Source of the DNA: Obrimoposthia wandeli
Lineage: Eukaryota
DNA length: 64,000 nucleotides
Assembly: GCA_977020255.1 (NCBI GenBank)
Contig: CDROCS010000253.1
Location: 1,984,001-2,048,000, forward strand
Direction: 5' to 3'
Position numbers and translations under genes: made by a program. Within the stretch, counting starts at the first letter, position 1. Every line of letters begins with the position of its first letter. The notes under the pieces were generated by a model that had not been told where the DNA came from, searched no databases, and saw only the letters and a list, made by a program, of their open reading frames with translations. Shown here piece by piece: positions 13,416 to 40,789 of the stretch.

Positions 13416-14498
13416 TTAATTGTGTTGAAAAAAAAGGATTAACTGTAAAGAAAATACAGCGACTAGCAATATTAAACTGGCACGAGTAACCAAGGTTAAA
13501 CTCGTCGGGATGTCTTTAGTGGTAACATTGCTGCCACAACCTAACGTAACAGAATTAATAGTTTTTCCATGATACAGCGCACTGCCGCCCAATTTTCTCC
13601 TCATAACGGTAGCACCAGCAGCCATTACCCAGCCGCCGTTATGACTCTTGTATTGATTACCTTGCCAATAGGCATTAACGATAGCCTTAAGAGTACTATC
13701 TTGCTTAACTCCCTGAATGGCATAAAGCAGCGTACAGCACTTACCCGAAATAAAACCGAGTAAATCATCAAGTCGAGCACTGGCATAACCAAAGTCAATA
13801 AAACGTGAGTTCTTATAGCCCCACATTGCATCCAAGGTATTGGCTAATCGATGTACTATTACCAGTGGGGCGCCGCCCACAAGGTAGTAAAATAAAGAGG
13901 CGATAACCGAGTCATGACCATTTTCTAACATCGACTCTATGGTCGCTCTCGACATTTCTTGCGCTGAAAGGTTGCTGGTATCTCTGCTCACCAAATATCC
14001 GGTAAAATGCCGGGCGGTTCTTAAGTCTTCAGCGTTAAGGGGCTTGTATACTTGCATAGCATGTTGATGCAAGCTATTTAGACCAATGGCGAGATAAATT
14101 ACGGTGGCATCGAGTAATATTTGCCAATACCATATCAGTTGATTAACTTGATAAAAATAGATAAATGGCAAAGGTAATACCAGTAGACACCAAGCCAAAG
14201 TACCCAGTAACTTTGCTTTTAAAGTAGCTTTATCGCCAGGGTTATTCTCTTGATATTGAGTTTCTTCCTGATTTGTTTTTCGATCCGTTTGCTGACTTTG
14301 TCGCAGTGATTGCTGATAAGGATTTAGCTTAGCCTCTAGTTTTTTTGCTAACCAGCCAAAGCCAACCAAGTAATGAAAATTCTTTGCTTCACCTAAATAT
14401 TTATCAAGTAATAGCGCCAGTGATAAGGTGATGAATGTAGCAAAATCAGGTAATAGCATTATGGCTTGGTGGTAGATATTTGCGATAAATTCTGACAT
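13416..14498 (-). CDS. cbiB: Adenosylcobinamide-phosphate synthase CbiB
   Basis: LALLLDKYLGE, HYLVGFG, LVSRDT, ATIESMLENGHD, NTLDAMWGY, ARLDD motifs; contains a Q/E/N-rich insertion of about 30 aa. Confidence 0.92.
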   Translation of the reverse strand: MSEFIANIYHQAIMLLPDFATFITLSLALLLDKYLGEAKNFHYLVGFGWLAKKLEAKLNPYQQSLRQSQQTDRKTNQEETQYQENNPGDKATLKAKLLGTLAWCLLVLPLPFIYFYQVNQLIWYWQILLDATVIYLAIGLNSLHQHAMQVYKPLNAEDLRTARHFTGYLVSRDTSNLSAQEMSRATIESMLENGHDSVIASLFYYLVGGAPLVIVHRLANTLDAMWGYKNSRFIDFGYASARLDDLLGFISGKCCTLLYAIQGVKQDSTLKAIVNAYWQGNQYKSHNGGWVMAAGATVMRRKLGGSALYHGKTINSVTLGCGSNVTTKDIPTSLTLVTRASLILLVAVFSLQLILFFQHN

Positions 14499-14590: not shown

Positions 14591-15172
14591 TTACCTGGCT
14601 AGCTGAAAACTATCATCATCATGGCCGTAAGTTAATGTTAATAGACAACCGTTGTCGAATAATTCATAGGCATTATCGGTTGAGTTATGGCCTAATTTAG
14701 CTAAAAAACAGCGTAATGCTTCACCATGGAAAATAACTAATATGTTTTTATTACAGTGATTATTGGCTAATCCTTTAAGTGCTTGATAAATACGTGATCC
14801 ACAGCTTATTGCACTTTCGCCACTTGGTGGTGTTATCTCGGTAAATTGATGCAATATTTCATGGTAGTTTTCGTCGGATTTAATGGCAGCAATATATTGC
14901 CCTTGCCAAGCCCCCAAATCTCTTTCTGTGAGGTTATCTAAACGGGCAATCGGAGTGTTTAATATTCGCTGGCAAATTAGAGCGCTATCAACAGAACGCC
15001 CTAGGGTTGATGAAACAATTAAATCAATTTGTTGGTTGGCAAGGCGTAAGGCAAGCTGTTCAGATTGTTGTTGACCTACTTCTGTCAGGCTACTATCTAA
15101 TTGGCCTTGAAAACGTTGGACTTTGTTCCATTTTGTTTGCCCATGACGAGCTAAGTATAAAGTTGTTTTCAT
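14591..15172 (-). CDS. Histidine phosphatase, CobC (alpha-ribazole-5'-phosphate phosphatase)-like by context
   Basis: Likely start 15172 (MKTTLYLARHG); RHG motif, LTERDLGAWQG, GES, second His in IFHG; upstream of cbiB. Confidence 0.8.
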   Translation of the reverse strand: MKTTLYLARHGQTKWNKVQRFQGQLDSSLTEVGQQQSEQLALRLANQQIDLIVSSTLGRSVDSALICQRILNTPIARLDNLTERDLGAWQGQYIAAIKSDENYHEILHQFTEITPPSGESAISCGSRIYQALKGLANNHCNKNILVIFHGEALRCFLAKLGHNSTDNAYELFDNGCLLTLTYGHDDDSFQLAR

Positions 15173-15350
15173 TTTAATCCAATAGCAATTATGACGATTT
15201 CTTATCATTTAAGCGGGGGAGGATAACTAAATCGTTACTTAGGTTCAACGCAAATATAATTTCTAGTGAGTATTCTCTTTTCATTAACATGTTGAGCTAT
15301 GACGGGGTTTATTGTTGAATAACTATCATGTATAACGTAATATCCGCGCA

Positions 15351-15576
15351 GATTTAGGTGTCTTCGGTGTTAATTATCCTGATAAACGTTATTAGGTAAA
15401 TAGCACTAATGAAGATGAAACGTGAAACTGGTTGAATACCAGTACTGCGCCCGCAACGGTAACTGTGAGCAGCAACAAAACCACTGTATTGAATCATTAT
15501 TAGGACATCACAATAATGAACGTATGGGAAGGTGTTGCAAGTGCGATGATCAGGAGTCCGGAGACCGGCCTAGATT
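15351..15576 (+). promoter_or_regulatory. Cobalamin riboswitch, long form with peripheral extension
   Basis: TTTAGGTG 5' arm; core AAACGTGAAACTGGTTGAATACCAGTACTGCGCCCGCAACGGTAA (15418-15462); CCACTG (15481) and TGGGAAGG (15525); GAGTCCGGAGACCGGCC (15554-15570); upstream of btuM-cobB. Confidence 0.92.
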
Positions 15577-15873
15577 ATAGTTATTTATACTTAATACAAA
15601 TACGTATAATTAACTATTACTCGACAACTGCGGTGGGCGGTAATTCAGAGAAAAGTAAATGCGCTGAATTACAGCAATGAATACCTATAAATAGTGTTCA
15701 TTAACGCATAAACATGTGTTTATCGATTTACCTGTCTATTGATTTTCGACTAATGGCTTCTCGGTTATTGGTTGTGGATAGTGTTTTATCATACAGAATA
15801 TAGCGTAGGTTTGCTCCTTAGCATTTACTGACTTTGATTTTCTACAGCGTTAATATTATTTAATGGGATCGTT

Positions 15874-16497
15874 ATGAAATCAGCCAATCAAAAGTCACCC
15901 GTTAGTTTACTATTCGCTGTATTTGCCTTATTAACATTACTTATGCTCGCCACGCGTACACATCACTTTGCCAGCTTAAATAACTTGCCAAGCGTATCAA
16001 TTACTATTTTTTTCCTAGCTGGTATCTACTTACGAAATATAAAAGCCTTTTGGTTTTTTTATACTTTATCAATCACCATCGATTTAGCAGCATCCTATTC
16101 TCGCGGTCAATTTGGCGATTGCATTACCTCCTCTTACCCTTTATTGGTGCTAAGTTATGGCACTATGTTTACGGTGGGTTATTACAGCAAACCAAACTGG
16201 CAGCAAAACATCTGGCAAATTAATATCATTAAAGTGGCACTGGCCTTATTTGTTGCTAGTTCAATTGCTTTCTTTATTTCAAATGGTAGCTACTACACCT
16301 TATCGGGTAAATTCCCTGAATTATCCTGGGCGGAATATGGCACGCGTGTTGATAAGTATTATTTTAAATCTATTTCTAATCCTGTTTTCTATGTTATTTC
16401 GGCGGTCGTTATTGATTTTACTGTAAGTCATTTTTTCACTGATAAAGCGATAAATACTAAGACCAGTGGTAATGCCAGTGTTAGTGGAAAACTATAG
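15874..16497 (+). CDS. btuM: BtuM, solitary ECF-type S-component cobalamin transporter
   Basis: LMLATRTHHFASLNNLP, SITIDLA, GDCITSSY and GSYYTLSGKF match my recollection of BtuM (TRSHHWAS, VIDY, FCVSPAY, GFYFYSGRF); about 6 TM segments; downstream of a B12 riboswitch. Confidence 0.82.
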   Translation: MKSANQKSPVSLLFAVFALLTLLMLATRTHHFASLNNLPSVSITIFFLAGIYLRNIKAFWFFYTLSITIDLAASYSRGQFGDCITSSYPLLVLSYGTMFTVGYYSKPNWQQNIWQINIIKVALALFVASSIAFFISNGSYYTLSGKFPELSWAEYGTRVDKYYFKSISNPVFYVISAVVIDFTVSHFFTDKAINTKTSGNASVSGKL

Positions 16498-16541: not shown

Positions 16542-17978
16542 ATGTCACAAGCGAATAAGAAAACCGTCCCCTCTCAAAATAAAGCATTTCAAAATAAAGT
16601 AGAACAGCAAGCGGGGAGTGGGGTTAAGTGTTCAGCATTGATTGTTGCTGCACCACATTCTGGCTCAGGAAAAACGACGATAACAGCCGCATTGGCTCGA
16701 TATCATCGTGATCAGGGACGTAAAGTTACCGTATTTAAAGTAGGGCCTGATTTTATTGATCCTATGATCTTACGCCAAGCCAGTGGTGAATTAGTGTATC
16801 AATTAGACTTGTGGCTCGTGGGGGAGCAAGGTTGTCGAGCATTGCTTCATCGAGCGGCTATGGAATCTGACCTTATTTTAATCGAAGGAGTCATGGGACT
16901 CTTTGATGGTACGCCCAGCAGTGCTGATTTAGCTGAGTACTTTAATATCCCAGTACTGGCTGTTATTGATGCTAAGGCGATGGCACAAACCTTTGCTGCT
17001 GTGACCTTTGGTTTAGCGACATTTCGCGAAAACTTACCCTTTTCAGGGGTGATAGCTAACCGCGTCAATACCGAACGTCATGCTGAATTATTAAGTACAA
17101 GTTTACCTAAAGAGTTTCGTTTTTACGGCCGTATTCCTAAAGATGACACCATAACGCTACCTGAGCGTCATTTAGGTCTAGTGCAAGCACAAGAGTTGAG
17201 TGATATTGATGCCCAGCTTGATAAAGCGGCCAGCCATATTGCTAATACAGGTTTAACAGAGTTACCTGCACAAGTTGAATTTTTTGCTCAAGAAGCTGAG
17301 GTTGATGGAGATTGTGCCCAAGCAAACATTATTGAGGGTGCATTGGTGGGTACGCGCATCATCATTATTAGAGATAGTGCTTTTAGTTTTATTTATGCGG
17401 CCAATATTGCTTTCTTAACACAAGCAGGTGCGGAATTAATCTATTGTTCAGCAATGCTTGATCCCCATTTACCGGATGGCGATATCTTATATATTCCCGG
17501 GGGCTACCCTGAACTTTATGCTAAACAATTAATGAACAATGAAACATTTCTTAGTGATATAAGAGCTTTTGCTGCCAGTAAAAAGCCTATTATTGCTGAA
17601 TGTGGCGGCATGTTGTATTTACTTGATCAGCTTACTGATATGGAAGGGCAGCAGTTTTCAATGGTAGGGCTTATACCAGGTAAAGCCACGATGCAGAAAA
17701 AGCTTGCTGCTATTGGTTCGCAATGGGTTAATTTACCTTCATTTACTGACAATGCTGCTGAAGATAGCGCAGACAGTATTATGCGGGGACATAGTTTCCA
17801 CTATTCTTGCGCCGATATTGAACTAGATCCTACCAGTCAAACAACGCATCACCCAAGTGAGCGCGCAGGCGAATTTGTTTATCAACATAACAATATTTTA
17901 GCGTCATACATGCATTGGTATCTCCCAAGTAACCCGAGTTTAACCTTACGCATTTTTAATAAAGCACGTTACTTGTAG
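16542..17978 (+). CDS. cobB: Cobyrinate/hydrogenobyrinate a,c-diamide synthase (CobB/CbiA)
   Basis: APHSGSGKTT, FKVGPDFIDP, IEGVMGLFDG, LPERHLGLV, GATase GGYPEL and AECGG. Confidence 0.94.
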   Translation: MSQANKKTVPSQNKAFQNKVEQQAGSGVKCSALIVAAPHSGSGKTTITAALARYHRDQGRKVTVFKVGPDFIDPMILRQASGELVYQLDLWLVGEQGCRALLHRAAMESDLILIEGVMGLFDGTPSSADLAEYFNIPVLAVIDAKAMAQTFAAVTFGLATFRENLPFSGVIANRVNTERHAELLSTSLPKEFRFYGRIPKDDTITLPERHLGLVQAQELSDIDAQLDKAASHIANTGLTELPAQVEFFAQEAEVDGDCAQANIIEGALVGTRIIIIRDSAFSFIYAANIAFLTQAGAELIYCSAMLDPHLPDGDILYIPGGYPELYAKQLMNNETFLSDIRAFAASKKPIIAECGGMLYLLDQLTDMEGQQFSMVGLIPGKATMQKKLAAIGSQWVNLPSFTDNAAEDSADSIMRGHSFHYSCADIELDPTSQTTHHPSERAGEFVYQHNNILASYMHWYLPSNPSLTLRIFNKARYL

Positions 17979-18013: not shown

Positions 18014-18037
18014 GCGCTATTTCAGTAGCGCTTTTTT
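18014..18037 (+). terminator. Terminator-like hairpin immediately before the CobN-like ORF
   Basis: GCGCTA-TTTCAG-TAGCGC followed by TTTTTT, then ATG 18038. Confidence 0.5.
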
Positions 18038-21000
18038 ATGAGATTTTTCATGACATTTTTTCATTTAAACAAAGTCAGTACAAACAACTTTTTACGGTAT
18101 GGTATTCGTAAAATATATTGTGTTATCGCATTATGTTTATTGAGTTTCATTAGCAGTTTTACACTCAATGCTGCAGAGCTGAAAATGCTGGCGTTAGTTT
18201 CAGACCGTTCTGCAGCTAGCATGGTTACAGGCGCTCATCAATTTTTAGCCACACAAGCTGACGTGGATGACTTATCAACTCAAATTAGCATTACCATACG
18301 TAGTGTTAATCAACTGAACCAGTTAACTAACAATGAAATTCAGCAGTTGATTAACCAGCATCAAGCATTAATTATTGCCGGCGTATTTGGTGAATCAGTT
18401 GAGCGTTTACTGGCATTAAATTACCCATTCCAACAGCCCCGTTTGATGTTAAATACCGATCGACGTTTAATGGTTTTACATCAAGACGTGCAAGGTGGCA
18501 ATGTCGAAAATTTATCTAAAAAACAATTACAATCACTGATGGTTTCATTAGATAAAAGTAACTATTTAACCGCGTTAGCTAAGAAACAAGAGCAGTGGCC
18601 ACAATTTGCTTATTGGTTGCAAGCTCGTGCTTACTGGCAAAATAGAGGAAAAGAAAACCTTGGCCAGTTATTTAATTGGTTGGGGAAAATTACTACGGCA
18701 AAGTCAGGTGTTAGCAATAAAAAATTACTAACACAGGCCGCAACAATACTACCCTTACAACCAATCCGCTTTTACTGGCAACAGCAACTGATTAGTATTG
18801 CAGAGTTGAAGGACAAAATAGTTCAAAACCAAGTTATACCTGAAGATAAACCCTTAGTGTTCATTATCGATCATGATACTGGCGATCAACCTGGGCAGTG
18901 GCAATTGCATCAGCAGCTATGTCAACGCCAGTGGCAATGTGTATCAGTGTTGGCAGGCTGGGGTAAACCCAGTGAACAAGCAATTGAAATTATCCGCAGT
19001 ATTGAATCATCACAGCCGATGGCGTTGATAGCATTACAGGACTTTGTTATTGGCGGAGGTGAAGGTAGAGAAGCAGTAACTCAAAAGTTTGAGGCACTAA
19101 ATATTCCAGTATTTAAAGGCATCAGAGTGACTGAATTGAGTGCCTTAGCGTATCAACTATCTCCTACTGGCTTACCTAGTGATAGTGTTCATTACCGCGT
19201 GGCTATGCCTGAGCTCCAAGGTGTGTCTCAGCCCCATGTTTTAGCGCTAGCGTCGAGTGCAAAAATTGATGTAGCCACGGGCGCAAGGTTATCAATTAGC
19301 CAAGTATTAATGCCAGAAGTTGAACGCCTACAAGCACGAGTCAATGCTTGGTTGGCACTAAAAACTACAGATAACGCAGCGAAAAAAGTAGCGATTGTTT
19401 ACTATAACCATCCCCCTGGGCGACATAATATTGGTGCAGATAATTTAGATGTACAGCAGTCGTTATGGCAAATATTACAGCAATTAAAAGCGCAAGGTTA
19501 TGATCTTGGCCCAGAGGCAGACTTTCCAAAATCTGCTGAAGCGTTATTAGATCTTTTACAATTGAAAGCCGTTAACTTACCGCAAGATGCAGGCGCGCTG
19601 AATAAAATGGCACCATTAATTAATACGATGTCAGTAAATGAATATCAAGGCTATTTTGATACCTTACCCAGTATTGTTAAAGCCGAAATGGTTGAAGGGC
19701 CATTAGGATATTTACATGCACGGATTAAGTATTACCTATTCGAGCAAGGGCAAAAAGAATTGGCGCAGTTGCCTGCGATTGAACGTAGAGCAGTTTTAGC
19801 GGCATTACTTGAAAATGTTGATAGTACCTCGGTTGATTTACATCATGCATTAGATGGGATCAGACATAAAGGACGGACGCGCGCTTTAGATTTACTGGCA
19901 CAACTGACCAAAGAGTATCAAAGCTTAATTGCGCTAACACGTGAAAATAATCCTGTTTCAACAGAGCAATGGCAAGATGCCGAGGCATTAAAAATAGCAT
20001 TAATTGCCATGCAAATTGAAGGTATTCGCGGTTGGGGGAAAGTACCGGGTAAAACTATGGTCTGGAATAATAAAATTTTGTTACCTGGTGTTCAATTTGG
20101 CAATGTTTTTTTAGGACCTCAGCCACCGAGAGGCTGGGAGCTTAATGAAGAATTATTGCATGCCAATATGACATTCCCACCACCTCATCAATATTTAGCC
20201 TTTTATTATCATTTACGTGAGGTATTTAAAGCTAATGCTATTGTGCATTTAGGCCGACACTCTACCTATGAGTTTTTACCTAAACGTGCGGTTGGTTTAT
20301 CAGCAAGCGATTATCCCTCACTTATTATTGAAAATATTCCCAGTATTTATCCTTACATTGTTGATGGCGTAGGAGAGGGTATTCAAGCTAAGCGTCGTGG
20401 TCTTGCGGTTATGTTAGATCATTTAACACCGCCATTGGCGACCACTGAGTTATACGATGGGCTACTACAATTACGTCAACTCATTGAAAGTGCAGAGGCC
20501 GCCTCAAATCAAGATACCAAGAAAAAAGCGATTAAGGCGTTACGTCATAAAATCAAAGTGTTGAATTTAACCGATGAACTTGTCGCGAGCATGGATGAAG
20601 AGTTACAGGTGCGTGGTATTGGTTTTGGTGAAGTTGATGATGATTTTTTACTGCACGAAGTGGGGCATTACCTAACTAAACTGCAAGAAGATTTCATGCC
20701 GTTAGGTTTGCATGTTTACGGCAAAGATTGGCAGCAAGAAGCTATTGAGATCATGATGACTTCGATTGAAAAAGGTGAGTTAGACTTAGATGATAATCAG
20801 CGTAATGAAATCAAAAAAAATCTAATTAAATCACCGAAGAGCGAAATGTCAGCTTTTTTAAATGCATTAAACGGTGGTTTTGTCGCACCAGGCAAAGGTA
20901 ATGATCCAATAAGAACGCCTGACGCACTACCAACGGGTCGTAACTTTTACGCACTTGATGGCAGTTTGATCCCGTCACAGCTTGGCTTTAGTACAGGCCA

Positions 21001-22645
21001 ACAATTAGCAATTAAAGCGAGACAACAAAATCCAGTTGTTGATAAAACGCACAAAGAAGCTGTTATTTTATGGGCATCAGATGCGGTGCGTGATGAAGGC
21101 GCTATGATTGCCTTCGGTATGGATATGCTCGGCGTAAAACCCGTGTGGAACCGCCGTGGTATCTTAAAATCGCTACAACTTATGCCACTTGATAAAACAC
21201 GTATTGAGCGTCGTGATATCGTTTTTACCACCTCAGGTTTATTCAGAGATTTATACGCCCAGCAATTAGCTTGGCTTGATCGCTCTGTATTACTGGCACT
21301 TGCGGCAAGCAAAAACATTATTGAGCGTGACCACCCCGCATTAATCAGTGCATTACGCGCTGCATTACAGCCTGTTGAACATATGCTTGAGCAGCAAAAA
21401 CATGACTTCAATGAAACCTTAACTAGCAATATGGTGGCGAGTAATTGGTTACGTGAAGCACAAGTTTTATTGCGTGAAAACGGGAATATAAGCCCTGAAT
21501 TACTGGGACGTCAGGCAAGCTATCGTATTTTTGGTACCGCACCCGGCGCTTATGGTGCTGGTATTAACCGTTTAGCTGAACGCTCAGGTGCTTGGCAAGA
21601 ACGCAAGCAATTAGGTGATGCGTATATTAAACGTATGAGCCATGCTTATGGCGTGCCGAGTGCTGGTGGTGAAATGGGCAGCAATGTTCAAGCAATATTT
21701 CGTCAACAATTAGCACATGTTAATAGTACCTATTTAGGTCGAGCCAGTAACCTTTATGGCTTAATCGATAATAACGATGCCTATGATTACCTTGGTGGTT
21801 TAAACCTAGCCATAGAAACGATTACAGGAGAGCAACCCGATAGCTTTGTTATTTCTCATGCAAACACTAAACAATTGTCAATTGACCCGCTGCAAACGGC
21901 CTTATTATCCGAGCTACGTGGACGTTTTCTTAATCGACAATGGATCCAACCATTAATGAAACAAGGCTACGCTGGTGCAAGAACCATGGGGAGCGAGTTT
22001 ATTGAAAATTTGTGGGGCTGGCAGGCCACTAGCCCAGAGATCATTCGCTCATGGGTGTGGCAAGATTTAAAAGCTATTTATATTGATGACAGCTTAGAGA
22101 TAGGTTTGGATGAATTTCTACAGCAAAAACATAATGTACACGTACAAAGTAATATATTAGCGGTAATGTTGGTTGCCATTGAAAAAGGCTTTTGGCAGGC
22201 AGATCAGCAAACTCAAACACAGCTTGCTGAACAATTTGCTAAGAACATTATTGAAAATGGTATTCCTGGTAGCGGCCATACCCATGCTAATCATCCTATC
22301 TATAATTTTATTAAACCACTGTTATCTGCACAATTAAATGCTCAACTGGCTGAAGTATTAGCAGCGGCGAATTATACACCTGTTGGTGAAGTTGGCTCTG
22401 GTGTGCAACATATTCAAGAAATAAGTACTGAAATTGAGCGACAAGATAATAACGCTTTGAAAGAAAGTGCGCAGGAAGATAAATCACAGGAAATAAACCC
22501 TCAAGATATTGACGAAAAAGAAAATTCTGATGAAATATCTGTTGAAAAAGACTACCTATTATTAGGGGTAATCTTGGTTATAGTACTTTTGATTTTAGCG
22601 GGATATCTTCGTTCTCGTCGTCAATTATCTAAATTGGAGCACTAA
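18038..22645 (+). CDS. CobN/Mg-chelatase H-family protein with N-terminal signal peptide and C-terminal TM anchor (BtuS/HmuS-like)
   Basis: VYYNHPPG, VQFGNVFLGPQPPRG, HQYLAFY, HLGRHSTYEFLP, DPIRTPDALPTGRNFY, FTTSGLFRD, GYAGAR motifs; hydrophobic leader ending ...TLNA/AE and C-terminal YLLLGVILVIVLLILAGYLRSRR. Confidence 0.92.
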   Translation: MRFFMTFFHLNKVSTNNFLRYGIRKIYCVIALCLLSFISSFTLNAAELKMLALVSDRSAASMVTGAHQFLATQADVDDLSTQISITIRSVNQLNQLTNNEIQQLINQHQALIIAGVFGESVERLLALNYPFQQPRLMLNTDRRLMVLHQDVQGGNVENLSKKQLQSLMVSLDKSNYLTALAKKQEQWPQFAYWLQARAYWQNRGKENLGQLFNWLGKITTAKSGVSNKKLLTQAATILPLQPIRFYWQQQLISIAELKDKIVQNQVIPEDKPLVFIIDHDTGDQPGQWQLHQQLCQRQWQCVSVLAGWGKPSEQAIEIIRSIESSQPMALIALQDFVIGGGEGREAVTQKFEALNIPVFKGIRVTELSALAYQLSPTGLPSDSVHYRVAMPELQGVSQPHVLALASSAKIDVATGARLSISQVLMPEVERLQARVNAWLALKTTDNAAKKVAIVYYNHPPGRHNIGADNLDVQQSLWQILQQLKAQGYDLGPEADFPKSAEALLDLLQLKAVNLPQDAGALNKMAPLINTMSVNEYQGYFDTLPSIVKAEMVEGPLGYLHARIKYYLFEQGQKELAQLPAIERRAVLAALLENVDSTSVDLHHALDGIRHKGRTRALDLLAQLTKEYQSLIALTRENNPVSTEQWQDAEALKIALIAMQIEGIRGWGKVPGKTMVWNNKILLPGVQFGNVFLGPQPPRGWELNEELLHANMTFPPPHQYLAFYYHLREVFKANAIVHLGRHSTYEFLPKRAVGLSASDYPSLIIENIPSIYPYIVDGVGEGIQAKRRGLAVMLDHLTPPLATTELYDGLLQLRQLIESAEAASNQDTKKKAIKALRHKIKVLNLTDELVASMDEELQVRGIGFGEVDDDFLLHEVGHYLTKLQEDFMPLGLHVYGKDWQQEAIEIMMTSIEKGELDLDDNQRNEIKKNLIKSPKSEMSAFLNALNGGFVAPGKGNDPIRTPDALPTGRNFYALDGSLIPSQLGFSTGQQLAIKARQQNPVVDKTHKEAVILWASDAVRDEGAMIAFGMDMLGVKPVWNRRGILKSLQLMPLDKTRIERRDIVFTTSGLFRDLYAQQLAWLDRSVLLALAASKNIIERDHPALISALRAALQPVEHMLEQQKHDFNETLTSNMVASNWLREAQVLLRENGNISPELLGRQASYRIFGTAPGAYGAGINRLAERSGAWQERKQLGDAYIKRMSHAYGVPSAGGEMGSNVQAIFRQQLAHVNSTYLGRASNLYGLIDNNDAYDYLGGLNLAIETITGEQPDSFVISHANTKQLSIDPLQTALLSELRGRFLNRQWIQPLMKQGYAGARTMGSEFIENLWGWQATSPEIIRSWVWQDLKAIYIDDSLEIGLDEFLQQKHNVHVQSNILAVMLVAIEKGFWQADQQTQTQLAEQFAKNIIENGIPGSGHTHANHPIYNFIKPLLSAQLNAQLAEVLAAANYTPVGEVGSGVQHIQEISTEIERQDNNALKESAQEDKSQEINPQDIDEKENSDEISVEKDYLLLGVILVIVLLILAGYLRSRRQLSKLEH

Positions 22646-22646
22646 T

Positions 22647-23153
22647 ATGTTGTATGGATTTTCGTTAGAGTTAATGCATTTAATAACCTCATGGCTATTG
22701 CAGCCCGTGGTTTGGGGACTCTTATTTTTTACGGCCTTATCACTTTATGAATTAGGCATAGCAGCAGGTGAGCGCTTTTCTGTTATCCCTGCGTTAGTTG
22801 CAGCAAAGCAAAGACGCCAACTGGTTGAACAAGGAAAAAAACGTATAGAGCGAGCTGATTTTATAACGCGTATTGCGCCGATGTTAGGTTTGATGGGAAC
22901 ATTAATCCCCTTAGGACCAGGATTATCTGCGTTAGGAACGGGAGACATTAGTATATTAACGACTGCGATGACGGTGGCTTTTGATACCACTATTATTGGT
23001 TTACTCGCTGGCGTTATTGGCTTTGTTTTAGGGCGTATGCGCAGGCGTTGGTACGATAATGCTATGCAGCGTTTAGATGATGAGGCAGTAGATATTCTGT
23101 CTGTTGCCGTGTCTAATCCATGTAATGAAAGCGTTTTAGCAAAAAGTGCTTAG
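22647..23153 (+). CDS. MotA/TolQ/ExbB proton-channel family protein (HmuU-like)
   Basis: APMLGLMGTLIPLGPGL and AFDTTIIGL motifs; 3 TM; 1 bp after the CobN-like stop. Confidence 0.88.
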   Translation: MLYGFSLELMHLITSWLLQPVVWGLLFFTALSLYELGIAAGERFSVIPALVAAKQRRQLVEQGKKRIERADFITRIAPMLGLMGTLIPLGPGLSALGTGDISILTTAMTVAFDTTIIGLLAGVIGFVLGRMRRRWYDNAMQRLDDEAVDILSVAVSNPCNESVLAKSA

Positions 23154-23173
23154 GCTTAAAAAGGGATGATGAA

Positions 23174-23542
23174 ATGAGTAATGCATGGCGCAGTAGCCAA
23201 TTTGACAGTCAAGAGCAAGAGCCTTTAGGGCCATTAGCAAACTTAATTGATATTATGCTGGTATTTGCTTGTGGCTTGATTGCCGCACTTGTTGCGCTAA
23301 GCCCCGAATTAGAACAACATTTTCAGGCTAATCAGCAAGAGCCTTTAGCAAATAAGGCGTTTTCAGTAAATAATGAGCCTTCAGCAAAAATTCAACCTGT
23401 TGACTCAATCGGAAAAGAGCTTACTTCGACGCCAGAAGCGTTGAAAAAAAAACTGCAAAGCCAAGAAGGTTATCAGTCAATGGGGCAAGTTTATCGCGAC
23501 CCTGAAACGGGTAAGTTAATTCTGATAAGTAATGAAAAGTAA
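23174..23542 (+). CDS. DUF2149 family single-TM protein (HmuV-like)
   Basis: PLGPLANLIDIMLVFACGLIAALV TM segment and C-terminal GQVYRDPETGK; typical partner of CobN-like/ExbB-like genes. Confidence 0.8.
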   Translation: MSNAWRSSQFDSQEQEPLGPLANLIDIMLVFACGLIAALVALSPELEQHFQANQQEPLANKAFSVNNEPSAKIQPVDSIGKELTSTPEALKKKLQSQEGYQSMGQVYRDPETGKLILISNEK

Positions 23543-23593: not shown

Positions 23594-24238
23594 GTGATGA
23601 ATGATATTAATAAAGACGCTGAAATTGAAAAAAAGGAAGAGTTAGCTAAAAAACAAAAACATATTGAGCGACAAAAGAAGATCAAAGCGAATGTTGATCA
23701 ACGTGTTGCGCAAGCCACAGAAGAACGCGGTGTTTTCGTAGTTATAACGGGTAACGGTAAAGGAAAAAGTACCTCTGGTTTTGGTACAGTCTTGCGCGCT
23801 ATAGGCCATGGCCAAAAAGCAGGTGTGGTGCAATTTATTAAAGGTAGTAAGTGGGAATGTGGTGAAATGAATATCTTAAAGCAATTCGATGTTCAACATC
23901 ATGTTATGGGTACGGGCTTTACTTGGGAAACACAAAACACTGAAACTGATACCATTGCAGCAAAAGCGGCATGGCAAAAAAGTAAAGAAATGCTCAGTGA
24001 TGAAACCCTTGATATCGTTTTACTTGATGAAATGACCTACATGGTAAAATATGGCTACATTGAGCTAGATGATATTATTGAAGCGTTGAATAACCGACCT
24101 AAAATGCAACATGTTTTAATTACAGGTCGTGCTTGTCATCGTCGACTCATTGAACTGGCTGATACCGTTTCAGAAGTGCAACCCATAAAACATGCATTTA
24201 AAGCGGGCATAAAAGCGCAAAAAGGGCTTGATTGGTAG
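23594..24238 (+). CDS. cobO: Cob(I)yrinic acid a,c-diamide adenosyltransferase CobO/BtuR, copy 1
   Basis: TGNGKGKSTSGFG, VQFIKG, LLDEMTY, ITGR, KHAFKAGIKAQKGLDW. Confidence 0.95.
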   Translation: MMNDINKDAEIEKKEELAKKQKHIERQKKIKANVDQRVAQATEERGVFVVITGNGKGKSTSGFGTVLRAIGHGQKAGVVQFIKGSKWECGEMNILKQFDVQHHVMGTGFTWETQNTETDTIAAKAAWQKSKEMLSDETLDIVLLDEMTYMVKYGYIELDDIIEALNNRPKMQHVLITGRACHRRLIELADTVSEVQPIKHAFKAGIKAQKGLDW

Positions 24239-25214: not shown

Positions 25215-25370
25215 TGAAGCAGCAGTTCACACTGCCGTTTAATCGGTAATTGACTGGTTTTAACCAGCCATTCTTTCGCATTGCTCGGTCTAACGATCGA
25301 ACACTTTGATCAAAAAAACATTTTGCAAAGTCAATCGACCGATCTTGACGTGGAGCTTATCGACTTCTTA
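25215..25370 (-). mobile_element. IS3-family remnant spanning the orfA/orfB junction, overlapping the mesD stop
   Basis: Minus strand 25368-25290 reads EVDKLHVKIGRLTLQNVFLIKVFDR* (resembles IS3 OrfA end KLHAKIGQLTxENDFL), then LDRAMRK and TSQLPIKRQCELL (25249-25220; resembles OrfB start); T7 run near the junction. From memory, not searched. Confidence 0.68.
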
Positions 25371-26406
25371 GGAGCTCTCTACGGACGATATCTGCACCTG
25401 CACTTAAGGCATTTAACTTACCTCTTGCAACGCGATGAGATAAAGGTGCCATGCCACAGTTAGTAGAAGGGTAAAGCTTGTCGGCATCTACAAATTTCAG
25501 TGCTTTTCGTAGCGTATTGGCTACTTCCTCGGGTGTCTCAATGGTATTGCTTGCTACATCGATAGCGCCGACCATCACTTTTTTACCGCGAATGAGTTCA
25601 AGTAGATCCATTGGAACATGTGAGTTGTGACATTCTAGCGAGATAATATCAATAGTAGATTTTTGCAGCTTGGGAAAAGCTTCTTCATATTGTCTCCACT
25701 CTGACCCCAACGTTTTTTTCCAATCTGTATTGGCTTTGATGCCATAACCATAACAAATATGCACAGCAGTTTCGCATTTAAGCCCTTCAATTGCTCTTTC
25801 TAAACAAGCGATGCCCCAATCATTTACCTCATCAAAAAACACATTAAATGCAGGCTCATCAAATTGGATAATATCAACACCGGCCGCTTCGAGTTCTTTA
25901 GCTTCTTGATTGAGAATTTTGGCAAATTCCCAAGCGAGTTTTTCGCGACTTTTATAATGGTCATCATACAGCGTATCTATCATTGTCATGGGACCCGGTA
26001 GAGCCCATTTGATAGGTTGTTTGGTTTGCTGACGTAAAAACTTAGCGTCTTCAACAAAAACAGACTTTTGGCGACTAACAGCACCTACAACCGTCGGTAC
26101 ACTCGCATCATAGCGATCACGAATTTTAACTGTTTTACGTTTCTCAAAATCAACGCCGTTGAGGTGCTCAATAAACGTAGTAACAAAATGTTGGCGGGTT
26201 TGCTCGCCATCACTAACAATATCAATACTTGCTTGTTGTTGATCTAGTAATGACAAACGTAAAGCATCTTGTTTGCCCTCAGTTAATTCCTCACCTTGCA
26301 ATTTCCAAGGTGACCAAAGAGTCTCAGGCTCTGCAAGCCAAGCCGGTTTAGGTAAACTGCCTGCAGTTGAAGTCGGTAATAGTGCTTTAAGGATATTAGT
26401 TTTCAT
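25357..26406 (-). CDS. mesD: Core (C-terminal-domain-only) cobalamin-independent methionine synthase, MesD type
   Basis: PTSTAGSLPKP, DGEQTR, LPGPMT, QFDEPAF, Zn ligands HICYG, SLECH, TNCGM; 349 aa without the N-terminal MetE half; adjacent to DUF1852. Confidence 0.88.
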   Translation of the reverse strand: MKTNILKALLPTSTAGSLPKPAWLAEPETLWSPWKLQGEELTEGKQDALRLSLLDQQQASIDIVSDGEQTRQHFVTTFIEHLNGVDFEKRKTVKIRDRYDASVPTVVGAVSRQKSVFVEDAKFLRQQTKQPIKWALPGPMTMIDTLYDDHYKSREKLAWEFAKILNQEAKELEAAGVDIIQFDEPAFNVFFDEVNDWGIACLERAIEGLKCETAVHICYGYGIKANTDWKKTLGSEWRQYEEAFPKLQKSTIDIISLECHNSHVPMDLLELIRGKKVMVGAIDVASNTIETPEEVANTLRKALKFVDADKLYPSTNCGMAPLSHRVARGKLNALSAGADIVRRELLRSR

Positions 26407-26486
26407 AATAAATGATGCCGTATATTTTGATTAACTTTTGAACGTAATGATTGAAGGTAAGTTTTGAATCTAGCTATTTAACGAAA

Positions 26487-27464
26487 CTATTGCGCGTAGT
26501 TAGCAGACCATTGCTCAAGCACAGTTTGGTGCGGTTTAATGAAGTGTTCTTCAGTAAATTTACCCTGCTCATTAGCCAACTGGCTGCGCTCTTCTCGATC
26601 ATAAACAATTTGCGTTAATGAATGGTCTAGGTTCTTTAAGTTTGGTTGATAGGATTTTCCTGCAACAGCATTCGCGTTATAAATCTCTGGTCGATAGATC
26701 TTTTGAAAAGTTTCCATCGTGCTAATGGTGCTTATCAACTCAAGGCTACTGTAATCATTAAGTAAATCACCAAAGAAGTAGAAAGCCAAAGGCGCAACAC
26801 TGTTTGGTGGCATAAAGTAACGAACCTGCAAGCCCATTTTTTTGAAATATTGCTCAGTCAAAGACGATTCATTTGGCTGGTATTCAACACCTAATACCGG
26901 ATGTTGGTTTTCAGTTCTATGATAGGTTTTGGTATCCGAAACACTGAGACATATGACAGGTGTTTTAGTAAAGTTTTGTTTATAAACTTCTGAATTGACA
27001 AAATACTGAAAGAGTTTTCCATGCAGTTCGCCAAAGTTATTTGGAATGCTAAATTTAGGCTGATCCTTATTATGATCTAGCAGTAATACGCTAAAATCAT
27101 AATCGCGAACATAAGAGGAGAAATTATTGCCTACAATGCCTTCAATGCGCTTGTTTGTTTGATGATCGACAATATTGGTTTTCAATACTTCAATCGATGG
27201 GAAGGCTTGACCACTACCTTCAATATCCATATCAACAGAAATGATTTCAAGTTCGACAGAATAACGGTCTCCTTTAGGATTATCCCAATGCGCTAAGGCA
27301 TTAAAACTATTATCAATCATATTTAAAGCGTTGCGTAAGTTAGCTTGACGGTAGCTTCCTCTCGCTAAATTAGCAAAATTGGTAGTGATACGCGTCTTGT
27401 CTGACGGGTGGTAATTTTCATCGAGACAAATGCTCTTAATAGTGAAGGTAAAGTCTTTATTCAT
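26487..27464 (-). CDS. mesX: DUF1852 protein MesX (partner of MesD)
   Basis: DENYHPSDKTRITTNFANLARG, RIEGIVGNNFSSYVRDYDFS, FQKIYRPEIYNAN; directly upstream of mesD. Confidence 0.88.
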   Translation of the reverse strand: MNKDFTFTIKSICLDENYHPSDKTRITTNFANLARGSYRQANLRNALNMIDNSFNALAHWDNPKGDRYSVELEIISVDMDIEGSGQAFPSIEVLKTNIVDHQTNKRIEGIVGNNFSSYVRDYDFSVLLLDHNKDQPKFSIPNNFGELHGKLFQYFVNSEVYKQNFTKTPVICLSVSDTKTYHRTENQHPVLGVEYQPNESSLTEQYFKKMGLQVRYFMPPNSVAPLAFYFFGDLLNDYSSLELISTISTMETFQKIYRPEIYNANAVAGKSYQPNLKNLDHSLTQIVYDREERSQLANEQGKFTEEHFIKPHQTVLEQWSANYAQ

Positions 27465-35168: not shown

Positions 35169-37046
35169 TTATTTTAAATATTTATAATCTAGTGTCAGAG
35201 TGTAACCACGCTCTGAACCAGGGTATTCACTTGAGGTTTGATAATCTTTGTCAGTTAAGTTTGTTACTTTCGCTAATAAACTTACTTGGTTATTTAGTCG
35301 GTAATTTAAACCAACATCAAGTAAAGTAAAGGCTTTAAGTGTTTTTTCTGTGTCGTTAGCACCGTCATATCGACTACCTTGATAGTTTACATCAAAGGTA
35401 AAGTCTAACTGTTTGAGTGAGTAGACAAAGTTATAATTGGCAGAAAAATTTGGTCGTCTAGCTAACTGATGATCTGTCGTTTTATCTTCAGCATCAACAT
35501 GACTTAATGTTAACGTGTTGTTGGTGTCAAATATATCAGCATTGAATGTTGCTTCAGCACCTAATATTTTAGCTTTTGCAACATTTGAAGGCTTATAAGC
35601 ACCTGATGCAGTAGGCGCCCATTCTATCAAGTTATCAATATCTGATTGGTAAATTGATATTTCTGCAGAGAGGATATCATTTTGAAAACGTGCTAAAAAT
35701 TCAGAGCTATCGGCAGTTTCAGAGATTAAATCAGGATTGCCTTGCCAAGGGTAATATAAGTCATTAAAGCTAGGGGCTTTGAAAGCAGTACCGTGGCTTA
35801 AAGAGAATAATAGTTGGTCATTAACTTGGTAACCAGCAGCCACTTGATACGTTGTTTCGCTATCAATATCGCCAACTTTATCATAACGGACAGAGGCTTC
35901 TAATTTTACCTGTTCAATATCATGACGACCCGTGATAAAAACTGCGCTAGCATCTCTATCCGTTTCATCATATTCTTTATTACTCTCAATGCTTTCTGTA
36001 TACCACTCAACACCTGCAGTAACTTCTGATGATTCAGCTAAAGGTAATTGAGCTAAGGCTGTTACTTGTTCACGGCTTGTAGTAAATAAGCTATTTTTAT
36101 TACTACTACCATTTGAAGTGTTGTACTTACTGTAGTTATCTTCAGTGCTGTCTTGTGAGGTACTTAAACCTAATTGCAAATACAGCTGTTCTAACTGAAG
36201 ATGGTTTCTTAATAGAAAGTGGTAGTTTTCGTAAGTGGTTTCGTCACCAATATCTTGAGTAGTTAAGCATAACAATGTTCTGTGGCCTTGGTGTACTGTG
36301 ATGTCCACTTAAATTCCAGCGCATAATCATAAATCACTCGTATAACCCAGACCCAACTTACAGATTGGCGGTCATAGCCATCTGCATCATTTTGGTCAAC
36401 GGTATATTTGCTACTACATAGGCGATCTATCATCATCAACAGTGAAGTCATTATTTGTTATATCATAACTATCAGTTGTTTCTTTACTAACACTGAATGT
36501 TGTAGCGCCATATGATAAAGCTATTACGCCTACTTTTATTCTACCTGGCTTGGTATTCACCACCTAATCACGTAAAATTTGGATTACACCACCAATAGCA
36601 TCAGAACCCCATAAAGCAGCTCTAGGTCCTTTAATAACTTCTACACGCTCAACTAACTGTACAGGTATCGCAGCAAGATTCTTGAGCCCAAGAGCCGGTT
36701 AACCGTGAATTCGAACACCATCGACTAAAAATAAGCTATGTGTTGAATTAGTTCCACGAACAAAAATCGAGGTGTTCTGTACCTTGCTGCATATCGATAT
36801 ACCGGGTACAACTCGGCCAAGTTCAGCAATAGATTTAGGTTGAATACGATCTATATCTATACGCGTGATAATAGATACCGTTGACATGACTTCATCTGTT
36901 GACTGTTTATATGGGTTAGCCGTAATGACCATATTTTCATCAGCTTTAATGGTGTTATCAATCGTTGTAGCGCTATTTTGCTCTGCAAAAGAAAGTGATG
37001 AGTAAAGTAGGCTGCTGATACTTAGTGCTATTAATGTTTTTTTCAT
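35169..37046 (-). pseudogene. btuB: Disrupted TonB-dependent cobalamin receptor BtuB
   Basis: ATG 37046 with signal peptide and plug motifs (VITAN, FVRGTNSTH, LVDGVR); in-frame TAA at 36699, then [31 protein letters not shown], further stops and frameshifts to about 36260; barrel C-half (FKAPSFNDLY, GNPDL, LARRP) in ORF 35169-36308. Total span about 626 codons. Confidence 0.88.
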
Positions 37047-37093
37047 GTTTTCCTCAGTTATAAGCACCCACCGTGCTTACAATGATAAATTAA

Positions 37094-37246
37094 ATTTTAG
37101 GCCGGTCTCCGGACTCGAGTTACCAATAATTGATAACTCGTACCGTTGCGGGGGCAGTATTGGTTTAATCAATTTCCCGTTTCACCCTCAGTTATGACTG
37201 CCGTAATTTTATTACTGACAAATTAAACTATTAGGCACCTAAAATA
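37094..37246 (-). promoter_or_regulatory. Cobalamin riboswitch, short form lacking the peripheral extension, upstream of btuB
   Basis: Minus strand: TTTTAGGTG...GAAACGGGAAATTGATTAAACCAATACTGCCCCCGCAACGGTA-(CGAGTTA..TAACTCG hairpin)-GAGTCCGGAGACCGGCCTAAAA; a TAAGCAC/GTGCTTA hairpin follows before the SD. Confidence 0.93.
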
Positions 37247-37267: not shown

Positions 37268-38176
37268 CTAGCTATGTTTTTGTTGCAAAATCGTCCTTGT
37301 TTGGTCGATTGATGCACACAAATCTTTTAACGCCGTTAAGCTTCGTATTGTCATACGGTGCATTGCATCGGCATCAGGTTGTAATATATGTTTATTGGCT
37401 ACTGCAGGAATTATTGGCCAATCTTGCCAATTAAAACCTTCGCGCTCTGTTTGGTTTACTGATAATGGTTGAATAATAAGTTGTACTGAAGCAGGTAATA
37501 CTTGCTCAATACTAATTTGCGGGTACGGTGTTATGACCTGTTTAAAAGGATTTTTTACTTTACATATATTTAAAAATTGTTGAGGCCAACTACCTTTTGC
37601 TACGGTTGTTAAGGGTCTAGACCAAAGCTCATAAAAACCAGTGATTTCTGTTTTATTTTGATAAGTTTTTTTTATTTTAGCTAATGATTGCTCAAACTCT
37701 TTCGCCACTTGTTCACCTTGTGTTGTGTGACCGGTAATTTTAGCAAAGCGACGTACTTCGTGTGCGATATCTGAAAACGTGCGAGGTTGCGAGTAAATAA
37801 TGTTGAAACCAAGTTGTTCTAATCGCGCTATATCATCACTAGGGCTACCACTTTTCCAAGCAATAATTAAATCAGGCTGTAATTCAATAACACGTTCAAG
37901 TTGTAAGCGAACATAACTACCTATTCGTGGTATTTTCTTTGCTTGTTCAGGGTAATCAGCAAATGTTGTGGTGCCAATAATTTGCTCGCCAGCGCCAATA
38001 TCATAAAGCATTTCAACAATGTGAGGGGCAAGGGCTATGATCGTTGGTTTACTTTTTTGTTTATTAGCTGCGTTACTTGCAGTGTTAACACTCTCTTGAC
38101 TCAGTTCTTTATAAGGCAAAGAAAAAACTGAGTTTGAAATTAATAATAAAGTAAAAAGTAGTGAGGTTAATTTCAT
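37268..38176 (-). CDS. btuF: Periplasmic cobalamin-binding protein BtuF
   Basis: Signal peptide; IALAPHIVEMLYDIGAG, LERVIELQPDLIIAW, paired Cys in the C-lobe; B12 operon context. Confidence 0.88.
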   Translation of the reverse strand: MKLTSLLFTLLLISNSVFSLPYKELSQESVNTASNAANKQKSKPTIIALAPHIVEMLYDIGAGEQIIGTTTFADYPEQAKKIPRIGSYVRLQLERVIELQPDLIIAWKSGSPSDDIARLEQLGFNIIYSQPRTFSDIAHEVRRFAKITGHTTQGEQVAKEFEQSLAKIKKTYQNKTEITGFYELWSRPLTTVAKGSWPQQFLNICKVKNPFKQVITPYPQISIEQVLPASVQLIIQPLSVNQTEREGFNWQDWPIIPAVANKHILQPDADAMHRMTIRSLTALKDLCASIDQTRTILQQKHS

Positions 38177-38204
38177 TATGTTGATTCTATGTGGTGATAA
38201 ATTA

Positions 38205-38234
38205 GAAAGCTAACATTATAAAATGTTAGCTTTC
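38205..38234. terminator. Perfect 12-bp hairpin between cobO copy 2 and btuF
   Basis: GAAAGCTAACAT-TATAAA-ATGTTAGCTTTC; weak U-tail, so it may be a stabilising stem rather than a terminator. Confidence 0.5.
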
Positions 38235-38260
38235 AGTTACTGTAAAGGGAGTAAGAACCT

Positions 38261-38878: not shown

Positions 38879-38934
38879 AAAGTTATCTCTGCTGTGTTAA
38901 TTTATTAAAGATTAGTTTATTAAGTATTTATTTA

Positions 38935-40744: not shown

Positions 40745-40789
40745 AATTAAACTCGTGTTTTCCCGCACGGTAATAAGAATAGTTTTTTT

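Follow-up and report, generated by a model that had tools for sequence, protein, structure and literature searches.

A cobalamin-riboswitch operon of a marine Colwellia encodes an exported CobN-like chelatase subunit with a MotA/DUF2149 pair: a candidate periplasmic cobalt chelatase

We analyzed a 64,000-nt stretch of DNA (contig CDROCS010000253.1, positions 1,984,001 to 2,048,000; hereafter the window, to which coordinates refer unless another contig is named) that carries an operon built around an exported CobN-like protein and an adjoining MotA/ExbB-like and DUF2149 gene pair. The host contig, 4.68 Mb in length within a 1.35-Gb mixed assembly, was assigned to a marine Colwellia, and the CobN-like protein is 99% identical to its counterpart in C. 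demingiae ACAM 459. The first-pass annotation of the window had described three consecutive genes, and translation and Pfam searches confirmed their open reading frames (ORFs) and families. Specifically, these encode the 1535-aa CobN-like protein, an exported, C-terminally anchored class I chelatase subunit by its sequence, of a clade referred to here as B12-type (18038..22645; CobN-Mg_chel, PF02514, 775.8 bits in three stretches against a cut-off of 24.5); a 168-aa MotA/ExbB/TolQ-like three-helix membrane protein that begins after a 1-bp gap (22647..23153; PF01618, 39 bits against a cut-off of 22.9); and a 122-aa DUF2149 protein of the HmuV/PA1925 family (23174..23542; PF09919, 49.1 bits against a cut-off of 27.1). 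That annotation had not included a riboswitch, a btuM-like gene and cobB upstream or cobO downstream, which together with the trio form an operon on the plus strand in the order riboswitch, btuM-like, cobB, CobN-like, MotA/ExbB-like, DUF2149, cobO, with intergenic gaps of 1-59 bp.

At the head of the operon lies a cobalamin riboswitch aptamer (15381..15587, plus strand; Rfam RF00174, 73.5 bits against a gathering score of 31.5), and the operon is repressed by this B12 riboswitch. The same element was found upstream, in the sense orientation, in all seven further related loci (Cognaticolwellia, Psychromonas, Thalassotalea, Pseudomaricurvus, Thioalkalivibrio and two Oleispira), giving 8/8 when the Colwellia window is counted. 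The first gene encodes a 207-aa BtuM-like protein, a putative small inner-membrane corrinoid transporter (15874..16497, plus strand), recognized by a phmmer match to PDB 8c7p/8ovv, a 199-aa protein deposited as 'Cobalamin ABC transporter' (ABC, ATP-binding cassette; E 7e-19, residues 15-185, Cys aligned to Cys). It gave no Pfam or NCBIfam match and no direct match to Thiobacillus denitrificans BtuM, and a literature search found no paper on PDB 8c7p. BtuM itself binds base-off cobalt corrinoids via a Cys-Co bond (PMC6072759). The second gene is cobB, encoding (hydrogeno)byrinic acid a,c-diamide synthase (16542..17978, plus strand; NCBIfam NF002204, 429.8 bits against a cut-off of 254; TIGR00379, 295.8 against 261.4; Pfam GATase_3 and CbiA), and the last is cobO/btuR, encoding the ATP:corrinoid adenosyltransferase (23594..24238, plus strand; PF02572, 211 bits; NF004637, 281 bits against a cut-off of 185).

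The CobN-like protein scored under every NCBIfam CobN/BchH equivalog cut-off (TIGR02257/NF004645, 604 vs. 1619 and 507 vs. 822 bits), and full-length scores against PDB chains placed it at about equal distances from HmuS (367 bits), CobN (323 bits) and ChlH (320 bits). In a tree of 33 sequences, built with no outgroup, 15 exported proteins of the B12 type formed a clade of their own with 100% support, while 10 canonical CobN proteins formed a separate clade (99% support) and exported proteins of the PA1923 kind a third (100% support); HmuS and ChlH were compared through the PDB chain scores instead. The first-pass annotation had suggested a phylogeny as a check, and in this unrooted tree the CobN-like protein did not group with canonical CobN.

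Alignment to HmuS, CobN and ChlH located the catalytic motifs of the superfamily. HLGRHSTYEFLP (20246..20281, plus strand) holds the counterparts of HmuS His-538 (its second His) and ChlH E625 (its Glu), both conserved in all B12-type orthologues; the segment HLGRHSTYEF (residues 737-746), which aligns to HFGTHGSLEF of HmuS/ChlH and HMGKHGNLEW of CobN, is invariant in 25 orthologues. The DGVGEGIQAKRR motif (20363..20398, plus strand), also invariant in orthologues, supplies the Glu equivalent to HmuS Glu-577 and ChlH E660. In domain V, the motif LYGLIDNNDAYDYLGG (21752..21799, plus strand) is CobN-like (LLDSDDYYQFxGG) and unlike HmuS LSLDHxxEFMGG: LIDNNDAYDYLGG shares with the CobN motif its overall pattern and an Asp at the position of HmuS His-1209, and several other positions differ. 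LSLDHxxEFMGG (with His-1209 and Glu-1212) has been described as the HmuS-defining motif (PMC12583661); it is missing here, the aligned residues being Asn, Asp and Asp. In addition, the site-1 heme ligand of HmuS, His-254 of its HGR motif, aligns to Asp335, within the invariant LQDFVIGGGEGRE; HmuS Met-79 falls in an unaligned region; and the Met-rich insertion of HmuS domain IV is missing, with no 120-residue window holding more than six Met. A Cys pair, C295/C301 (LCQRQWQC; 18917..18940, plus strand), is invariant in 25/25 sequences and confined to the B12-type exported clade. It stands beside an HDTGD stretch and could be a periplasmic disulfide or a metal or metal-delivery site. Across orthologues down to 42-45% overall identity, neither the catalytic motifs nor dozens of cavity residues vary. 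As judged from its sequence, the protein is a class I chelatase subunit of its own deep clade, neither canonical CobN nor HmuS, and its active site is of the chelatase type. The first-pass annotation had left direction and substrate open, proposing a '(de)chelatase' of corrins or porphyrins; the motifs, together with the gene context described below, favor cobalt insertion into corrinoids and not HmuS-type heme de-chelation.

Both hydrophobic ends that the first-pass annotation had reported were recovered from translation and hydropathy. A basic N-region precedes hydrophobic residues 26-46, which end in LNAA and form the core of a signal peptide or signal anchor (18113..18175, plus strand), and a C-terminal transmembrane (TM) helix, residues 1507-1524, is followed by the basic cytoplasmic tail RSRRQLSKLEH (22556..22642, plus strand; also evident in the orthologue alignment). 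Because both ends obey the positive-inside rule, the large domain is predicted to lie in the periplasm. The Colwellia cleavage site is not a clean AXA; textbook AXA signal peptides are found in orthologues, for example from Thiohalorhabdus, Thioalkalivibrio and Oleispira (sites such as GQA/A, AQA/A and AWA/D, the slash marking cleavage), where the sites directly precede the first conserved strand. Among the sequences compared, every CobN-family protein with a DUF2149 neighbor has the leader and the C-terminal TM helix with its basic tail, and all 10 canonical CobN proteins lack both hydrophobic ends. Between the last conserved globular residue and Gly1522 of the TM helix runs a variable, net-acidic linker of 91-123 residues. 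This Gly is conserved across all exported clades, and the positions kept only in exported CobN-like proteins cluster at residues 700-800 and 1200-1400 and include it. Thus, sequence logic supports a protein that is exported and anchored.

Class I chelatases are ATP-driven cytoplasmic machines. The window had been reported to lack cobS/cobT or chlI/chlD genes for their partners, the ATPases associated with diverse cellular activities (AAA+), and this absence extends genome-wide in the carriers searched. No match was obtained in a CobS search of the window's own 4.68-Mb contig, and searches for CobS and BchI/ChlI in the C. demingiae genome and nine other carriers gave only weak generic AAA+ matches. 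Five carrier species were examined first (C. demingiae, Psychromonas marina, Pseudomaricurvus albidus, Thioalkalivibrio sp. and an Oleispira metagenome-assembled genome), to which five more sampled carriers were added. Those first five have no CobN-family gene besides the exported one, except for a second exported paralogue in Colwellia. The Colwellia chromosome that holds the window carries a second trio, of the PA1923-like clade and with no adjoining B12 genes (contig C253:4312886-4317900; loci L006, L010 and L011), which consists of a 179-aa MotA-like protein, a 112-aa DUF2149 protein (102.8 bits) and an exported CobN-like protein of 1364 aa, with a divergent TonB-dependent receptor of 727 aa.

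The MotA/ExbB-like and DUF2149 genes had been put forward as a companion pair of the CobN-like gene, and related loci bore this out. The gene order CobN-like, MotA, DUF2149 is kept in 29/29 of them. We also drew 301 gammaproteobacterial genomes evenly, of which eight carry the B12-type trio. In this sample all 14 DUF2149 genes adjoin a MotA-like gene and lie within 4 kb of a CobN-family gene, as do 6/6 in this assembly, and no canonical CobN gene in either set has a MotA/DUF2149 neighbor. The AlphaFold2 model of the MotA-like protein has a predicted local distance difference test (pLDDT) score of 88.9, and its top 43 Foldseek matches in the PDB are all ExbB, TolQ or PomA; these matches are modest (E ~4e-3, TM-score 0.43-0.59), and a PDB sequence search with the protein gave nothing significant. 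The predicted fold is thus of the ExbB/TolQ type. Its invariant residues are R75, P78, L80, G81, L82, T85, P88, G90 and P91, and the motif RxxPMLGLxxTxIPxGP is invariant in both exported clades. The DUF2149 protein has a single TM helix, a variable linker and an invariant C-terminal GxVY(R/K)DPxTG(K/R). The TM Asp to which the first-pass annotation drew attention is Asp26 of LANLIDIMLVF (codon 23249-23251), invariant in 25/25 orthologues, and by analogy only would be essential. No fusion of DUF2149 to CobN or MotA was seen among the best 150 of 485 representative proteins, which were all 49-248 aa long, the four longest having no second domain. A complex prediction pairing DUF2149 with CobN-like residues 660-1535, run without our alignments, returned 0.00 with a low-confidence partner fold and counts neither way.

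We also considered whether DUF2149 is exclusive to CobN-like loci. This held in the gammaproteobacterial sample and in this assembly, and was broken by three monoderm-like metagenomic contigs. On these (loci L061, L063 and L065), MotA_ExbB proteins of 261-274 aa and DUF2149 proteins of 138-161 aa adjoin very large surface proteins with LRR_5, CW_binding_2 or Big_2 domains, one of more than 2600 aa, and also Peripla_BP_2/FecCD ABC importers, possibly forming a proton-driven uptake module in bacteria that have no outer membrane. On one 3.5-kb contig with DUF2149, MotA_ExbB is the sole neighbor in view. This distribution shows that MotA-DUF2149 is a general module with different extracytoplasmic clients.

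In the late-cobalt pathway, the reactions of CobB, CobN and CobO follow one another. DUF2149 is followed directly by cobO in nearly all B12-type loci, and in most cobB is adjacent, on either side; TonB-dependent receptors, BtuF, CbiB and a PduO-type adenosyltransferase are other frequent neighbors. Seven of the eight trio carriers in the 301-genome sample have a B12-type cobB (Fisher p ~1e-5). In another sampled genome, G282, an exported protein of an unrelated exported clade is also flanked by cobB, cobO and cbiB, which looks like independent recruitment. Separately, what appears to be a widespread CobB-like paralogue is encoded in about 85 of the 301 genomes, most of which have no CbiC. This protein of 460-480 aa reaches 380-450 bits on the cobB subfamily model, clearly above the 240-320 bits of the B12-cluster cobB genes.

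CbiC/CobH is an obligatory enzyme of ring synthesis. It was not found on the window's contig, in the five species first examined or in 6/8 sampled carriers, and CobQ is present in those five species. Therefore, these organisms start at or near cobB and must import a corrinoid. Within the mixed assembly, canonical CobN and CbiC occur on contigs from other bacteria (C2866, C5466, C1724, C4196 and C361), which are likely de novo B12 producers by the aerobic pathway and could donate corrinoid intermediates to Colwellia.

The two CbiC-positive exceptions among the eight sampled carriers, G168 (Thiohalorhabdus sp.) and G268, both of ~71% GC, have the trio, cobO and cobB within ~10 kb of an aerobic-type de novo cluster, with a receptor nearby. 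The cluster encodes a CobG-like protein with NIR_SIR domains, CobH and two or three corrin methylases (among them CobI and CobJ), and CbiD lies just past the trio's cobB. Genome searches of G168 and G268, which are drafts of unestablished completeness, found no other CobN-family gene and no CobS, ChlI, CobW orthologue or CbiK. By gene content, the exported protein is the only evident late cobalt chelatase in these two genomes.

We propose a mechanism that builds on the observed gene content and regulation, the export signals, the conservation of the catalytic motifs and the phyletic coupling, and whose substrate, reaction direction and motor action on the chelatase we infer. The Sec pathway would export the CobN-like class I large subunit, and its C-terminal helix would anchor it to the periplasmic side of the inner membrane, with the long acidic tether linking helix and ectodomain. 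In the periplasm it would insert Co2+ into a metal-free corrinoid, be it hydrogenobyrinic acid, its a,c-diamide or a later metal-free form, which Colwellia, unable to build the corrin ring, would get from its neighbors. The cobalt product would be imported via BtuM-like or BtuFCD transporters, whereupon CobB would amidate it, CobO would adenosylate it and the CobQ/CbiB late pathway would complete the cofactor. ATP-driven CobS/CobT are absent and could not work in the periplasm; the MotA-like/DUF2149 pair may act as an ExbB/ExbD-like proton-driven stator that replaces CobS/CobT and gives the chelatase mechanical work. Metal-free corrinoid substrates do exist in nature, because Chromatium, a gammaproteobacterium, when deprived of cobalt makes such compounds as far as hydrogenobalamin (PMC7693184, PMC5103170). 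We consider it probable that the CobN-like protein catalyzes a reaction of corrinoids in the periplasm, and lean slightly toward its working in the insertion direction; whether the motor acts on it is an even call. For the whole reading, in which a cobalt chelatase of the periplasm acts on metal-free corrinoids and is coupled to an ExbBD-like motor, our confidence stops a little short of an even chance. A bolder reading, which we regard as possible with more doubt than belief, is extracytoplasmic cobalt insertion by a secreted chelatase driven by a stator using the proton motive force, serving metal-free-precursor cross-feeding in auxotrophs and acting as the cell's own chelatase in Thiohalorhabdus-type producers, with siderophore-like export and re-import.

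Several points weigh against the motor-coupled periplasmic chelatase. All of the support is computational. A profile of 25 DUF2149 sequences retrieved no solved ExbD, TolR or MotB chain at E up to 10, and the likeness of DUF2149 to these proteins appears to be one of architecture only. The pairs on the three monoderm-like contigs have no CobN-like gene, which shows that the module is not confined to chelatases. A TonB-dependent receptor is also encoded at most B12-type loci and could be what the motor serves, and recombinant HmuS, the nearest characterized exported relative, turns over its substrate without HmuU/V (PMC12583661). As for the pathway, the carrier G253 has no cobB, and six sampled genomes have a B12-type cobB with neither CbiC nor any CobN-like gene. 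These six ruled out the proposition that cobB without ring synthesis always marks trio carriers, and because of them cobB in ring auxotrophs does not alone call for a chelatase. In the two de novo producers a periplasmic step needs export of a metal-free intermediate and re-import of the product, and no exporter was identified in them; moreover, G168 has a two-domain CbiX-like chelatase gene on another contig, and G268 has a weak CobS-like AAA+ match (91 bits against a cut-off of 558).

First among the alternatives, and one that we judge unlikely, is that the CobN-like protein is a corrinoid enzyme of the periplasm that works without an outside energy source and that the MotA/DUF2149 pair energizes import through the neighboring TonB-dependent receptor, the arm being either a housekeeping TonB or the tethered CobN-like protein itself. 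Receptors flank the trio in 6/8 sampled B12-type loci, a seventh, G168, having one ~15 kb away, and they also occur at the Thioalkalivibrio, Oleispira and PA1923-like loci (L050-L053). HmuU/V and PA1924 have been assigned to receptor energization in the heme and zinc literature (PMC12583661, Fig. 1 legend; PMC4542158), and the activity of HmuS in vitro in the absence of U/V agrees with an enzyme that needs no motor. A long acidic tether with a single TM helix likewise recalls TonB/TolA, and the solved TonB-ExbBD and TolQRA structures, going by their titles, place such a helix on the pentamer rim. However, the 301-genome sample has no DUF2149 gene beside a receptor without a CobN-like gene, the Colwellia operon and the Pseudomaricurvus locus have trios with no receptor nearby, no annotated flank contains a TonB gene, and the periplasmic part of DUF2149 is unlike that of ExbD. 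Because the monoderm-like organisms, which have no outer membrane, keep the pair, a purely receptor-directed role is disfavored.

A second alternative runs the reaction in the HmuS direction: in the periplasm the protein would remove cobalt, or an incorrect metal, from corrinoids or metalloporphyrins that have been imported, for metal acquisition, analogue detoxification or re-metalation (compare the 'metalloporphyrin salvage' of Rodionov et al. for BtuS, as relayed in PMC6460266). HmuS does give the best full-length PDB score (367 bits), topology and partners are as in HmuS (PMC13227078, PMC11681262), PA1922-25 relatives respond to zinc and cobalt supply (PMC4542158), and the BtuS family was predicted to salvage metalloporphyrins, according to the citation in PMC6460266. 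Nevertheless, His-1209 and His-254 of HmuS are both replaced by Asp, the Met-rich insertion is missing and the domain-V motif resembles that of CobN. Furthermore, the constant neighbors cobB and cobO use the product of cobalt insertion and not of its removal, free cobalt would be no gain to ring auxotrophs, and in two genomes the gene occupies the place expected of the pathway chelatase. On this evidence we find de-chelation distinctly improbable. We give only a slim chance to a third possibility, that catalysis has been lost and the protein, large and periplasmic, binds corrinoids or passes them from the outer-membrane receptor to BtuM or BtuFCD; the putative transporter encoded by the operon's first gene has no binding protein of its own, but catalytic His/Glu motifs and cavity residues that stay invariant at 42-45% identity are hard to explain without catalysis. 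Finally, an ordinary cytoplasmic CobN with missed partners and incidental hydrophobic ends, as the public annotation of every member as 'cobaltochelatase subunit CobN' would have it, is close to refuted by the scores under all CobN equivalog cut-offs, the separate clade, the textbook signal peptides of orthologues with neither hydrophobic end in the 10 canonical CobN proteins compared, and the lack of CobS, ChlI or CobW orthologues in the carrier genomes searched.

Our literature search found no paper that tests the B12-regulated trios or their clade, assigns a direction to the clade or shows the function of an HmuU/V-type pair. The trio architecture was already known from the Hmu and PA1922-25 systems, and a B12-regulated 'BtuS' type was predicted in 2003, as cited in PMC6460266. 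Three points are new: an active site resembling that of CobN, the position of this protein in aerobic-type clusters as their only evident chelatase, and how strongly, and within what limits, the protein is coupled to the motor pair. If our proposal is correct, an exported chelatase with a kept catalytic site and an ExbBD-like motor would be a new way to power metal insertion, and a new kind of client for 5:2 motors. The B12 pathway would gain a compartment, with one step of making or salvage outside the cytoplasm, and thousands of genes annotated 'CobN' in genomes without CobST would be explained. The proposal would also predict exchange of metal-free corrinoids in cobalt-poor seawater and soda lakes, and would give ring auxotrophs a hitherto unrecognized cross-feeding route on metal-free B12 precursors. 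The same logic touches on what HmuU/HmuV do in Bacteroidota of the gut and mouth, and what PA1924/25 do in Pseudomonas.

Other features of the window also relate to B12. Divergent from the operon, on the minus strand, lie genes for a cobC-like phosphatase (14591..15208; Pfam His_Phos_1) and cbiB/cobD (13416..14498; Pfam CobD_Cbib), both with NCBIfam matches under the equivalog cut-offs. Between cobB and the start codon of the CobN-like gene, a consensus scan marked a terminator-like hairpin (7 bp, GC-rich) followed by T6 (18014..18031, plus strand). It could set the expression ratio inside the operon; in the promoter/terminator consensus scan of the region, site counts equaled chance expectation, and this included hairpins of the 18014-18031 type. 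Just downstream of the operon, a short Meth_synt_2 protein (349 aa) stands beside MesX (612.7 bits), and the pair (25357-27464, minus strand) has the appearance of a B12-independent methionine synthase. At 35169-37220 (minus strand), a btuB-like receptor gene is headed by a second cobalamin riboswitch (37083-37220). Same-frame stops separate its plug ORF (36699-37067, 122 aa) from its barrel ORF (35169-36308, 379 aa), and the split could reflect a pseudogene or an assembly error. Adjoining the receptor gene is a conventional corrinoid uptake set (37268-40768, minus strand) with a BtuF-like binding protein, in which ORFs 38935-39921 and 39914-40768 occupy the positions expected for btuC/btuD and were placed by position only. 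This set includes a second CobO/BtuR paralogue with a Co_AT_N motif (38261-38878); with the CobO of the operon there are therefore two adenosyltransferases, one per uptake route.

Among the closest known systems are two that the first-pass annotation had named as parallels, HmuS-U-V and PA1923-25, and the literature bears both out (PMC11681262, PMC4542158). HmuS of Bacteroides thetaiotaomicron and Porphyromonas gingivalis is a heme de-chelatase accompanied by HmuU (MotA/ExbB) and HmuV (DUF2149) (PDB 9d26; PMC12583661, PMC13227078, PMC11681262), and its activity was established in 2025. Like the Colwellia protein, it is an exported, membrane-anchored member of the CobN family with adjoining MotA/ExbB-like and DUF2149 genes and no AAA+ partners. 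Unlike HmuS, the Colwellia protein, from the Gammaproteobacteria, is encoded under a B12 riboswitch with cobB/cobO and not in a heme uptake operon, it lacks the HmuS motif, the His-254 ligand and the Met-rich insertion, and its reaction probably runs in the opposite direction. With the CobN-CobS-CobT system (PDB 9uk9, 7c6o) it shares the fold family, the catalytic His/Glu motifs and, as neighbors, cobB and cobO, whose products act before and after cobalt is inserted; its domain-V motif has the overall CobN pattern. In contrast to canonical CobN, it is by its sequence secreted and anchored, has no CobS/CobT/CobW, and carries the extra invariant Cys and ~280 extra residues.

BtuS was named by Rodionov et al. 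in 2003 for a third, CobN-like type, B12-regulated in some genomes and predicted to be periplasmic, as reported via PMC6460266. The Colwellia locus fits that prediction, which, in the same secondhand account, was one of metalloporphyrin salvage and not of corrinoid metalation. The characterized BtuS1/BtuS2 of B. fragilis act in heme-iron use (PMC6460266). PA1922-PA1925 of P. aeruginosa, in the Zur regulon (PMC4542158), is similarly made up of a receptor, an exported CobN-like protein, an ExbB-like protein and DUF2149, but belongs to a different clade, is regulated by zinc and not B12, and has, with its relatives, no cobB/cobO neighbors except in the sampled genome G282. Finally, the 5:2 motors ExbB-ExbD-TonB and TolQ-TolR-TolA resemble the Colwellia system in the MotA_ExbB domain and fold, in a single-TM partner with an Asp, and in a third component with one TM helix and a long linker. 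The Colwellia pair differs from ExbBD/TolQR in its minimal 168-aa MotA-like protein and in a DUF2149 that is dissimilar in sequence, with a short periplasmic part and a C-terminal motif of its own, and its putative third component, unlike TonB/TolA, would be an enzyme anchored by its C terminus.

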